Positions 9,501-15,500 of a stretch of 64,000 bases of DNA are shown here, piece after piece (the first letter of the stretch is position 1; each line of letters starts with the position of its first letter). The translations under genes and the position numbers were made by a program. Source of the DNA: Tubulanus polymorphus (Eukaryota; Animalia; Nemertea); assembly GCF_964204645.1 (NCBI RefSeq), contig NC_134033.1:16252655-16316654 (forward strand), in the 5' to 3' direction. The notes under the pieces are model-generated. The model was not told the DNA's origin. It worked only from the letters and a program-made list of their open reading frames with translations, and made no database searches.

Positions 9501-12500
9501 TTTCTGAAGGGGGGTGGCTCCATGCTGTAGCGGGTAAGCTTGCTCCAGGCTGCAGGAGGATAAGGGTGACTCCGGGATGGATCCAGGCAGCTAGGGTACG
9601 ATCGTACACGTGTTTATATATTTCTAGATATGAAGAGAAGGCGTTGCTCGATGTGCTCCGATCTCAGACGGATTTAGACGCGATCGGTTCGATGATCTCG
9701 ATACGTTCGATGGCCGAGGACGTGCAGCCCGATCACGTGACCGCCGTCAAACACGAGGAGCAGCGAGCGATCGGCTCGATCGACTGGTCGATTTACAAAC
9801 AATACGTCGCCGCCGGCAGCGGCGTCGTCAAGTTCGTCGTCGTCATAGTGATGAATATAATCGCTCAGGCCGTTTATATCGCGGCCGATTGGTGGCTGTC
9901 TTACTGGTTAGTACCTTATCCGCTCACTAGGTGGCTGCATCCCTCTGTGATTAATTCAGAGATTCATAAGATAACAGATCTTGAAATTTTGACCGTTTTC
10001 TTAAGAATCAGTCAACAGTGAGGATATTTGAACTATTGGTGTCTTGTTTTTCTTGCTGGTATCAAGTGCCACGACGAACCTCTTGATAAAAAACAGCCTC
10101 CACTGAGAATATCTTATTATTTAATCAGGGAATTTGAAATTTGTGTTTTCTTCTTGTTTTTGCTGGTGATGAGTGACAGAAAGAGCCTCTTGATGAGAAA
10201 CTGCCTTCACTGGGGATATCTTTTTGATTTTATAAGAAAATTTGAATTTTTGGTATCTTGTTCTTGTTGTTGACGAGTGGCACAAGGAACCTCTTGATAA
10301 GAAACAGCCCTCACTGAGGATATCTTTTTATTCAATCAGGGGATTTCTGGATATGGGTCGGGGAATCCCAGGCAATGTTAGATTCCCTGATCTGCACAGA
10401 ACCCCGATGATGTCAGCACTTCAATAATTGTACTTCGATTTGATGATGTTTCAGGTCGAGGCAAGAAGCACTACGCGCGAAACTGAATTCAACAACGACG
10501 CCGCCTATCAACGAATACACGAACCGAACCATCGCGACGGGGAATATCACCGTTTCGCCGCCGGTGGCGCCGTCTATCGACGGAGTAACGATATTCGACA
10601 CTTACACGAATATATACATATTCACCGGATTGACGTTCGGAGTTCTGATATTCGGCTTCATTCGCGCTCTGATGATGTACGAAGTTTGCGTGTCGGCGGC
10701 GAAAAATCTACACAATAAAATGTACGACTGCATCTCGAAGGCGCCGATCATATTCTTCGACACGAATCCGGTCGGTGAGTAGTTCGTTTCTATGACTGTA
10801 GGTGGCAGCAGCTGTAGTAGTATCTTTACTACTTGGAATTTGTTTTGAAATGTACAGCTGAAGGGGCTGCAGTTTCTCAAAAAAGTTGATTAAAGATGAG
10901 TGGTAGATAGATGCTGAAGTTACGATGAACTTTTACTTGTCACTATGTCAACTATCCACTGTTTTACTCTAACAAACTTTTGAGCAACTGACTCCAGGTT
11001 CTGCAGTTGCTTAAAAGTTGGTCAGAGTTAACCAGTAGATAGTTGACATAGTGGCAAGCTCATTGTAACTACAGTATTTATCCGCCGGTTATCTTTAAAC
11101 ACATTTTGAGCAAATGCAGCCCCTGGAAAACGTTAAAAAATCGTTAAACTGTTAAATCTTAGGAATGATTTCTAGACCTGGTTCCACAGTTCGAGTTGCG
11201 AGTTTAGATTCAACTCGAAAAACATCGAAAATGAACTGAATAATTTCCACTACATAAAGTCAAATTCGACCGAGAACTGTGCAACTGGCTCCTGCTTATA
11301 GATATATTACGATTAAAATCTCGAAATTCACTTAATTTAAAAGAGAAAAGTTTCCATTTCACTGATTTATGAATGAAATATGTCGACGATGAAATATTAA
11401 ACTCGACTTGTATGTATGTATGTGTTTAGGTAGCGTATTAAATCATTTTACCGGAGATCTTGGTAAAGTTGATGATAGTCTTCCGATGGCTATTGAGAAT
11501 TTCACTGAGGTACAACAACAATTAGAAAATAACATAACTCGACAAATATGTCGCAATCAGCATGATGATGTGTTGCGATGTACAATAAACCTCACTCTTT
11601 AGTTTTAACGGGGGCCGGATTTGACTGGACTCATTATAATTGAAACCTACGGTTGAAAACAATTTGCCATTAGTAATCATGAATTTTATTGAATGCTTGA
11701 AGTCATTGAGAATGAGAAGGTCATCTTATTAAACAACTAATCATAATTTTACTGAATTTTTGAAGTCATTGAGAATGAGAAGGTCATCTTATTAAACAAC
11801 TAATCATAATTTTACTGAATCTTTGAAGTCATTGAGAATGAGAAGGTCATCTTATTAAACAACTAATCATAATTTCACTGAATCGTGGAAGTCATTGAGA
11901 ATGAGAAGGCCAGGACCCAGTTCCGCAGTTGTGAGTTAAGATTTGACTCAAGAGTTAAAACTCATCGAAAAAGAACTACTTATAACTGTGAGTTAACTCA
12001 TTAAGTCGTTACTGTGGAACTGGGTCCTGGTTATTATAAATTTACTGGATCATTTGAGATCATTGAAAATGAGAACGTCATCATTAGTAACTAACTAACC
12101 ATCAACTTCAACCCCGAAAAAATTGTATTTTTCAAATTTGGCTTCACCCACTAGATGGGGTAGCTGTAGTCCCCCCCAGTATCAGTGAAGTGAGGTTTGT
12201 TGTATATTAATGGATAGTATATTTTTGTCGCTTGGTGCTTTAAGTTTCATTATTATGGTAGCACTTCGATCGCGCTTACCATCATGGGGCGGATATACCT
12301 AACGAATTCAGCCGCTGTTGTACATTTTTTTTTTCATTAAGTTGAATGATATCCTCCTCTCTCTCTCATCATTTATAAGTATAAATGCATGTTTTTGAAT
12401 AGTGAATATTTGATTTATTTGTATGTAAAACAGGCCGCGTACAAGCACGTTTTTCCTCTGATCAGGGTCGCATCGACGAGTTATTGCCGACCATTTGGTA

Positions 12501-15500
12501 CGATGTTTTCGAGGTGAGTTCTCTACTAAAACACGGCCCGTCAGCTACGCTCACTCGCCCTCGGTCGGCTTCATCGCTCGCCGGGGTCGGCTCTCGATGG
12601 TCATCTACATCACTCGCCAGGGTTGGCTTCATTCACTTGCCAGGGTTGGTTTCATTCACTTGCCATGGTTGGCTTCATTCACTTGCCAGGGTTGGCTTCA
12701 TTTACTTGCCATGGTCAGCTTTGTCCACTCGCCAGGGTAGGCTTCATTCACTCTCCGGGGTTGGCTTCATTCACTTGCCAGTGTCGGCTTTGTTCACTCG
12801 CCAGGGTTGACTTCATTCACTCTCCAGGGTTGGCTTCATTCACTTGCCAGTGTCGGCTTTGTTCACTTGCCAGGGTTGGCATTATTCTACGCGTTGTCGC
12901 ACTCATTACGGATCGGAGGGGAGAGGGTCGGTAACACTCAATTGCTAGGGTTTGAATCCATCACTGCCCAGTGTCATTTTCTCTACCCCCCTTACCTTAG
13001 CTATAAGCATGTATTGTGTCAATTTATTGTGTAGCTGATTCTATAGTTTTAATTGCAATTCAGCGTAAAATTTGGTAAAAGCTTTCAACGTTTGCTGCGC
13101 ATGATTATTGTGAATACAATGTGGAATGATTAGAATTAGAAATTAGAACAATTTACGAAGGGAAGACTTTTTAACAATGCCAGCATCGGGGCCACTAGAA
13201 TACCATTGATTTTAATGCGGCCACGTTTTACCGGGGGGGGGGGGGGTTGGGAGGGGGCCTCGTAGGTGGCTTTATAACTGTACTTTACTGGCTCTGTTTT
13301 ATATATATTGAGAAAAGTTGCGCACTAACAATGAAATATATCTTTGAACTAACAGTCATCTACCGGAATGTTGATGTTCTCCTCATTATAAATAACCATT
13401 GACGAAACACTCTGAGTCCGTGTTATGAAGATAAGACGAAATCCGGCAATAAGCATAAAAACAAATATTTCCTTGAACTAGTAGTTTATTCGACTTTTCG
13501 ACTTTATTCTAATAGCCATCTTCAGGAATGCTGATGTTGTCCTCATTATAACCATTGATGAAACACTCTGAGCCCGTGTTATAAAGATTATATAAAATCC
13601 CGCAATAGCAATAAGAAGAAATGTTTCCTTGAGCAAGTGTCGTTTATTCAGCGTTTCGACTTTATGCTAATACAGTGGAACCTCGTTAAAACGAACTCGG
13701 ATACAACGATTCATCGGATATGAAAAATATAGAATTTTGTCCCAAGTAAGACAGTTTGATACTGGATATAACGAACTATCGGTTATAGTGAACAGATATT
13801 CTGGCCGCGTGAAGTTCGTTGTAACGAGGTTCCGCTGTAGTCGTCCTCGGCATTAATATAGTGAATTGTAACGTGTTCAATTGCAGCTGTCGCTGGTCGT
13901 ATTGGGAAGCGTATTCGTAGCTGGATTCGTGAACCCGTGGGTATTTATACCGACCGTTCCTCTGACCTGCGCGTTTATATTCATCAGATATTACTATCTG
14001 TGCACGTCTAGAGAGGTGAAACGTATCGAGGCTGCAGGTAAGTACCATCCGCATTCAAGGGGGTCTTACGCAATATGAGACTCTGTGATACCTGCAAAAT
14101 TTCGAAGTTCATGTTAAAAGGGCTACAATGTTGTAAAAAAAGGCACAAAAGGTTTTTTCAAAAGTCTGAATGGCACGATTTCATTGAAAATTCTAGAAAG
14201 GATTCTTCGGTAAGACCCTCAGATCTTGCTCTAACTTACTTTGGTTAGACCCTCAGATCTTGCCCTAAGATCTTGCCCTAACATACTTTGGTAAAACCCT
14301 CAGATATTGCCCTAAGATCTTGTCCTAACATATTTCGGTAAGACCCTCAGATCTTGCCCCTCTTTCCAAACCTATATAATATAGATTTGGATATGTATAT
14401 TTTTTCACATGTAGCGCCCTCTATTTGTAGCGCGTGGACCGGTATTCTCACACGTCAGCGCCAGTCTGAATGGTTTATACACGGTGCGAGCGTTCGGAGC
14501 CCAGGACGCGTTCGTTAAAGAGTTTGAATTCCACCAGGACGTACACACCGAGGCCTGGCACAGTCTCGTATCCACAAATGGCTGGTTCGGGGTCAGGTTG
14601 GATTGGGTCTCCAGCGGGTTCGTCATGTCTGTCGCTTTCTGCAGTGTTCTCATGGCTAAAAGTAAGTAATTATTCTAAATATCTTCGGGATTCAGTTCCA
14701 CAGTTGTGAGATCAGTAAGTAGCCACTACATATTTGAGAACAATCTTTATGAAAATACTTAGCCTTAGTTTGGCACTTTGAATGGGCCTACATTGCCTGT
14801 TCTAGGTCGGCCATACGTATCTTACGAGTATATCAAAAATTTATAATCTTGGTATTCGAAAGGCATGGAAAATGTAATTGGGAAACCCGTAAGAACCCCG
14901 GTTCATTTTCAATGAGTGTAATGAGTTTTAGCTGAATGATTTTTATCTTAACGGTGAACTGTGGAACTGGGTCATTGATTGCTAGAAAACTTCTCTCAAT
15001 TGAAAAAGAATATTTGTTGAAGGACCTTGAATTTTGAGATATTTCTATCAGGAGTCAGTACTATCAAACTGTACAGTTGATTAAAGTAGGATTATTTATT
15101 GGTTTTTCAGATTTAGATGGTGGATTAGTTGGATTATCAGTCACTTATGCTATAGCATTGTTAGGATTATTTCAATGGGCTGTCAGACAAAGCGCGGAAG
15201 TCGAAAGTCAGGTAAGGTGCTAGGCTAATCTAGCTATGCAACACCTCCCACCGACCAGGCTGTTGCCTCAAGTCCACTCCACTCCCTCTGATGCATTCTT
15301 TTTATTGTACTATTTATAGATGATCTCAGTTGAGCGGATTATACAATATTGTAATCTCGAAGCTGAGGCTGGTTTGACGGAACCGGCTGATGGCGAACCT
15401 CCTCCCGATGACTGGCCTCGTCACGGCGCTATACAAGCCGAACGCGTCTGTTTCTCGTATACAGCAGACGGACCTCGAGTTCTTAAAAATATCAACTTCA

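Follow-up and report, generated by a model that had tools for sequence, protein, structure and literature searches.

A tandem pair of 80-nt homologous exons encoding alternative starts of transmembrane helix 9 in the ABCC4/MRP4-like gene of Tubulanus polymorphus: a probable case of mutually exclusive splicing

In the nemertean Tubulanus polymorphus, a stretch of 64,000 nucleotides (nt) of contig NC_134033.1 (assembly GCF_964204645.1, positions 16,252,655 to 16,316,654 of the forward strand; hereafter the window, in whose own positions all coordinates are given) carries a gene for an ATP-binding cassette (ABC) pump of the ABCC4/MRP4 type, in which two homologous 80-nt exons, exon A (11430-11509) and exon B (12434-12513), lie one after the other on the + strand and encode two versions of the same 27 residues. 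In one RNA sample, exon B predominates, with splicing at both of its ends, and the acceptor of exon A is used as well, from the same upstream donor as that of exon B. The reading favoured here, at a probability of roughly 0.55, is that A and B constitute a real pair of mutually exclusive exons, B being the default form and A a minor or regulated one. In other words, the single ABCC4/MRP4-like gene of this worm would contain tandem-duplicated exons of which one only is taken into each productive mRNA.

Regarding the anatomy of the locus, both exons are found where a preliminary description, made from the DNA letters alone, had placed them, right after the FFDTNPV motif; each is bounded by AG and GT, is entered in phase 1 and left in phase 0, gives the translation proposed at the time and contains no in-frame stop. 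The constitutive exon upstream (10455-10774, + strand) encodes transmembrane helix 8 (TM8), a short helix with FFDTNPV and the first base of a split Gly codon, and ends on the donor TCG/gtgagt; it aligns with human ABCC4 764-818 in a PDB search and corresponds to positions 37-97 of the Pfam ABC_membrane profile. Exon A (tttag/GTAGCG...ACTGAG/gtacaa) has a weak donor and exon B (aacag/GCCGCG...TTCGAG/gtgagt) a consensus donor, and the 27 residues encoded by either are equivalent to human ABCC4 819-845. The constitutive exon downstream (13887-14037, + strand) encodes the membrane part of TM9 and the start of TM10. The whole gene takes up about 530-19600 of the + strand; when frog and octopus ABCC4 are compared with it by tblastn, residues ~92-1299 of these proteins lie in exon order over transmembrane domain 1 (TMD1), nucleotide-binding domain 1 (NBD1), TMD2 and NBD2, the N-terminus falling outside the window. 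From this layout, which is that of the subfamily, the gene is assigned by sequence to ABCC4/MRP4; besides, the closest solved structures to the 10455-10774 exon are those of ABCC4 and Pfam finds ABC_membrane in the exons flanking A and B.

For evidence from RNA, the contigs of four runs (X2, X3, X4 and X5) were compared with positions 10440-15300 of the window (4861 letters); such contigs lose rare variants and can show that a form is present, not that it is missing. X4, a run whose kind is not on record, consists of spliced, cDNA-like contigs; X2 and X3 gave unspliced, DNA-like pieces running over exon-intron borders, and X5 (guessed to be RNA, 2015) gave nothing on 10440-15300. Record 22 of X4 (1780 nt, depth 90.7) comprises 28 nt of the upstream exon followed by the joints 10774>12434, 12513>13887, 14037>14431 and 14661>15111; it spans five introns, all joints being GT..AG, and carries ~1190 nt more downstream. 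Two further constitutive exons of the + strand are placed by this record, namely 14431-14661, which corresponds to Pfam ABC_membrane positions 177-249, and 15111-15211. In record 18 (323 nt, depth 10.4, identical to the window), the same 28 nt are joined to exon A instead (10774>11430, GT..AG). Record 17 (1385 nt) covers 10454-10775, where position 10775 is the branch point at which the contig ends. Of the four junctions by which the preliminary description had suggested checking its proposal, 10774>11430, 10774>12434 and 12513>13887 are thus seen, and 11509>13887 is not seen among the X4 contigs; nor do the contigs of that run list the joints 11509>12434 and 10774>13887, which would denote inclusion and skipping of both exons, respectively.

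The length of the exons provides a frame trap, since 80 nt do not make a whole number of codons and either double inclusion or double skipping leads to a stop in the next exon. When A and B are both included, B is read in another, open frame and the stop is met at 13918-13920; when neither is included, it is met at 14009-14011. The reading frame is therefore kept by single inclusion only, and an mRNA that includes both A and B, or that lacks the two, would be unproductive and presumably removed by nonsense-mediated decay (NMD). In Drosophila, exon pairs that are homologous, equal in length and matched in frame are almost always mutually exclusive (PMC3228551), and the sequence features on which that work relies, i.e. 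closely similar length (here exactly 80 nt each), preserved splice sites and reading frame, and homology, are all found in A and B. As to the mutually exclusive pair advanced in the preliminary description, its anatomy, its frame trap and the presence of both acceptors in RNA have held, while splicing on both sides has been seen for B only.

The homology of A and B is well marked in spite of their divergence. Ungapped, they are identical at 9/27 residues and 39/80 bases, and neither this base identity nor their BLOSUM62 score of 40 was reached in any of 20000 shuffles. A profile of the 27-residue segment was built from 29 homologues, A and B being excluded and only segments with N-R at columns 5-6 being kept (the three segments left out were misannotated read-throughs with no alignment at all), and was run on all open reading frames (ORFs) of at least 12 codons, on both strands, from window 1-22000 and three other loci. 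In window 1-22000, exon B (23.0 bits, E 8.7e-6) and exon A (19.8 bits, E 8.4e-5) stand clear of a runner-up at 4.3 bits; as these two alone match the profile there, they are both genuinely homologous to the segment, and no third copy is present in that range. Likewise, tblastn sets A and B on identical residues, 829-855 of octopus ABCC4 and 818-845 of frog ABCC4, with 46-48% identity to octopus ABCC4 against 39-42% for the flanking exons. That one of the two stretches resembles the segment by chance, leaving one real exon only, could be argued from comparisons of single exons, as BLASTP of A against B (26-residue translations) yielded no alignment, the queries being too short, and PDB searches with one of the two exons did not reach significance, exon B alone having no match and exon A alone matching CFTR and ABCC2 at the homologous place but weakly (E 0.5-0.8). 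Such a coincidence, to which next to no probability can be given, is nevertheless refuted by the profile scores and the shuffles, as well as by AG and GT borders in the right phase around both exons and the use of both acceptors in RNA. The top matches to exon A alone in the PDB were to heptad repeat 1 (HR1) of the coronavirus spike and were set aside as chance matches.

What distinguishes both exons from the rest of the subfamily is the motif at the start of the segment. Following FFD..P., the canonical G-R-[IV]-L-N-R-F-S-K-D is encountered neither in A nor in B. All 29 homologues (segments pre-chosen for N-R at columns 5-6) have G-[RIV]-x-[LQM]-N-R-[FC...]-S/T-K/R-D, and the N and R are also invariant in an independent alignment of 14 sequences; this motif is a conserved trait of the subfamily, not its definition. 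Exon A keeps L4 and N5 and has S2, H6, T8 and G9 instead of the motif residues; exon B keeps R2, R6 and S8 and has Q4, A5 and S9 instead. When the ten columns at least 85% conserved in the family are considered, A keeps seven (1, 4, 5, 10, 12, 15 and 19) and B eight (1, 6, 8, 10, 12, 15, 19 and 24), the three losses of the former and the two of the latter having no column in common, in agreement with the earlier remark that each exon retains a different subset of the motif. Taken as evidence, however, such complementary subsets had to be discarded, because losses of this size fail to overlap by chance in 56/120 of cases, i.e. ~0.47 (hand count), so that the complementarity of the A and B losses carries no weight. 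The absence of a canonical GRILNRFSKD copy from 10775-13886, also reported at the time, was confirmed and extended, as none was found by the profile in window 1-22000 nor by a canonical query in the 268-Mb assembly. In the latter search, A and B were the best matches, followed only by ABCC1-like paralogues; in these, the only paralogues to turn up in the worm's own genome, the 27-residue exon is not split. The assembly of the worm thus contains no canonical version of the 27-residue segment at all.

Several observations nonetheless weigh against a productive exon A. The sole contig containing it, record 18, is unspliced past the A donor and ends at 11722, within a 63-nt tandem repeat, and the junction 11509>13887 was not found among the X4 contigs, which stem from one run and one sample. 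The A donor, GAG/gtacaa, is weak, whereas the five other donors checked are GTGAGT, GTAAGT or GTAAGG, three of them having been seen spliced in RNA. Besides, A is without the Arg invariant in 29/29 homologues (R6 to H) and is also without R2, and five distant animal loci, none of them from a close relative, have a single exon only. The main rival explanation, held well short of an even chance, is that A is the relic of an old exon duplication, with an acceptor that is still recognised and a weak donor that is inefficient, and that only the B protein is made. Transcripts with A would then either retain the next intron or include B as well, and reach a stop in both cases, making A at most a poison exon that lowers expression; when the intron is retained, the frame indeed continues for 30 codons up to a stop at 11600-11602. 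In addition to the unspliced A contig, the poor donor and the lost arginines, the depth of the A contig (10.4, vs. 90.7 for the B contig) is in line with a relic, though depth is a weak measure. An AATAAA is also present after A, at 11584-11589, and the RNA contig passes beyond it, up to 11722.

On the other side, a missing A-donor joint is weak evidence, as contigs drop rare branches, and a thin A>13887 branch may have been lost in assembly next to one of about nine-fold greater depth. The weak donor fits either a regulated alternative exon or a decaying one. Motif loss is no mark of a dead copy either, for B, the main form, is itself without the family-invariant Asn (N5 to A). The age of the duplication, set beside what A has kept, also speaks against a relic. 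Only 12/26 third codon positions are identical between A and B, base identity is 49%, and the 150 nt on either side of A and B are unlike (local scores reached by 28/300 and 121/300 shuffles), which indicates that the duplication is old; despite this divergence and introns that can no longer be aligned, A has kept exactly 80 nt without any indel, an open frame, both splice dinucleotides and seven of ten conserved columns, a combination that neutral decay would rarely leave (a rough estimate, not computed). This amounts to moderate evidence that A has been under selection for most of its history, and leaves room for a recent loss of function.

Polymorphism adds some information on constraint. 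Between the assembly and the individual sequenced in X2 and X3, seven differences lie at 10512-10692, in the 320-nt coding exon upstream, and as six of these seven single-nucleotide polymorphisms (SNPs) are synonymous, the gene is under purifying selection; taken together, these differences point to very high diversity with purifying selection on the gene. Indels are frequent in this neighbourhood: the 200 nt past A have two, besides two SNPs, as against no difference of either kind in exon A itself; about two SNPs would be expected in 80 nt, and their absence in exon A alone is not significant.

Another explanation of record 18 would take the A acceptor as an intermediate splice site of the recursive type, at which G/GTAGCG would serve a second time as a donor, now to B, leaving A out of the mature mRNA altogether. 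Exon A starts with GT, so that once it is joined a GT again follows the upstream exon, and an RNA species made of the upstream exon, A and unspliced intron is just the intermediate to be expected. However, the recreated GTAGCG is a poor donor and the intron is only 1.7 kb long, whereas the introns in which recursive splicing is known are very long. As the kept frame, length and protein homology of A would furthermore be left unexplained, this mechanism is considered very improbable.

Coming back to mutually exclusive use of A and B, the part of the pump that would be exchanged can be located on a structural model. According to the preliminary description, the segment follows the coupling helix of TMD2 and runs into TM9, and a homologue model computed with AlphaFold2 bears this out, with a short FFD helix, after which the long TM9 helix begins on the cytosolic side. 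The model comprises frog ABCC4 696-1001, from a 14-sequence alignment, with a mean predicted local distance difference test (pLDDT) of 75.7 and values of ~70 around the segment. Its helices extend over model positions 65-110 (long), 114-119 (short, ending in FFD) and 121-164 (long), the alternative segment being model 123-149, i.e. frog 818-844 or human 819-845. The A/B segment is therefore modelled as the opening 27 residues of helix TM9, a cytosolic stalk, while the hydrophobic part of TM9, encoded by the next exon, is presumably membrane-embedded. The short helix is taken here as the coupling helix of intracellular loop 3 (ICL3) of type IV ABC exporters. Using A in place of B would accordingly swap the TM9 stalk at the TMD2-NBD interface and could change the coupling or regulation of the pump, not its membrane pore.

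How the choice between A and B could be controlled was sought in the introns, with a scan for inverted repeats covering 10775-13886. Three hairpins resembling miniature inverted-repeat transposable elements (MITEs) were found at 10936-11058, 11910-12030 and 13671-13839, with arms of 55, 30 and 27 nt, respectively, that are 83-93% complementary. Contig depth in the thousands over these hairpins shows them to belong to abundant repeat families, and depth is very high across 11907-12069. The A-B intron (11510-12433, + strand) holds a 63-nt tandem repeat (11674-11909; 3.7 copies, 95% matches), the MITE-like inverted repeat at 11910-12030 and one arm pair, namely 19 nt at 11578-11596 and 12189-12207 that are 89% complementary. 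These arms lie 69 nt past the A donor and 227 nt before the B acceptor, and their origin by chance is somewhat unlikely from a rough count. On either side of exon A, two related arms (11175-11190 and 12011-12026) could base-pair with each other in the pre-mRNA, and a second tandem repeat follows B at 12610-12887 (23/69-nt unit, ~12 or 4 copies). No docking/selector layout could be supported by this inverted-repeat scan of 10775-13886 in the one genome, in which only the MITE-like hairpins and the 19-nt pair came up. In the proposed scheme, B, with its consensus donor, would be the default form and A, with its weak donor, the minor or regulated one.

The 27-residue segment is one of only two duplicated places in the gene according to the tblastn map, the other being the TM5-6 cassette, a first exon pair on the + strand at ~4531-4779 and 6039-6293, both members of which fall on frog ABCC4 302-385. 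With ~1060 nt of mRNA sequence upstream of 10454, record 17 of X4 may extend as far as this cassette. TM9 presumably belongs to the same helix bundle as the swapped TM4-TM5, as in type IV ABC exporters. According to the preliminary description, the two pairs could give up to four isoforms in a 2x2 combination, or else two coordinated ones. In the latter case the two pairs might be spliced in coordination, resulting in two transporters with co-adapted helices in one bundle, not in four combinations, and the differing motif losses of A and B might reflect a functional specialisation of the TMD2-NBD coupling region; this, however, is regarded as unlikely.

Elsewhere in the window, a CT-rich low-complexity stretch at 1900-2450, in an intron of the ABCC4 gene, is open in three frames with Ser/Leu/Pro-rich translations. 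Two ORFs lie downstream of the ABCC4 gene, namely a long one encoding sulfotransferase domains at 25835-26629 (Sulfotransfer_3, E 1e-11) and an intronless ORF of 323 codons for a G protein-coupled receptor of the rhodopsin family at 30465-31433 (7tm_1, E 4e-15).

If exon A is productive, the worm's only ABCC4-type pump exists in two versions with different cytosolic TM9 stalks, the part that relays movement between ATP-binding domains and membrane helices. With the TM5-6 pair included, the gene would then offer a natural test of which ABC-exporter helices are interchangeable and of whether one exchange requires the other. The repeated, independent origin of mutually exclusive exons in MRP genes would also be extended to a nemertean and to the ABCC4 type. 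Should A be a relic instead, the locus would illustrate the decay of a duplicated exon whose acceptor remains active.

In five distant animal loci, i.e. a 69-kb locus with the whole gene from the sea cucumber Holothuria leucospilota (L014) and four others from ENA and Logan assemblies (L003, L004, L010 and L011), there is one canonical exon each and no second copy, which indicates that the duplication is not an old, widely shared feature; over the next exon, the latter four are 53-59% identical to the worm, and so are as distant from it as frog or octopus. As in the worm, these loci have a 27-residue exon that starts at the Gly after FFD..P. and is followed by a GT donor; unlike the worm, they have a single copy of it, with the GRILNRFSKD motif and scores of 58-66 bits vs. 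20-23 bits for A and B. An exhaustive protein search returned no nemertean orthologue, its best matches being 53-59% identical, at the distance of frog or octopus. Word-index protein searches came back blank whether the A-containing ORF or the 76-residue next exon served as query, and thus reached neither a close relative nor a transcript-derived protein, a result that says nothing on longer or shorter kin.

Isoforms X1 and X3 of Octopus bimaculoides ABCC4 (XP_052827296.1 and XP_052827299.1), a lophotrochozoan orthologue, are equal in length and differ only at 301-379, that is in the TM5-6 cassette; since this is the place of the worm's first exon pair, that pair is either shared by or convergent between a mollusc and a nemertean. 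Unlike in the worm, both octopus isoforms have a canonical segment starting with GRVLNRFSKD, for which no alternative is annotated.

Beyond the ABCC4 subfamily, mutually exclusive exons, including two clusters in one gene, are already known in MRP/ABCC genes. Arrays of mutually exclusive tandem-duplicated exons occur in metazoan MRP genes with independent origins across phyla, including annelids and molluscs, as illustrated by Drosophila melanogaster MRP (CG6214), with a cluster of eight exons and a second, separate event in the same gene, and by the mutually exclusive exon events of Caenorhabditis elegans mrp-1 (PMC6071210, PMC7434440, PMC9741552). A substitution of tandem duplicated exons is also described for human ABCC9, and the human, fly and worm events are called unrelated (PMC9741552). 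The fly and C. elegans genes resemble the one presented here in that they encode ABCC pumps with equal-length tandem-duplicated exons of which one is used per mRNA. They are ABCC1-like, whereas the Tubulanus gene is ABCC4-like, and the cluster of the fly counts eight exons, controlled by docking/selector RNA pairings, whereas the Tubulanus gene has two. Human ABCC9 is likewise an ABCC gene with substitution of homologous exons, but it is a different gene and the exchange takes place at a different position.

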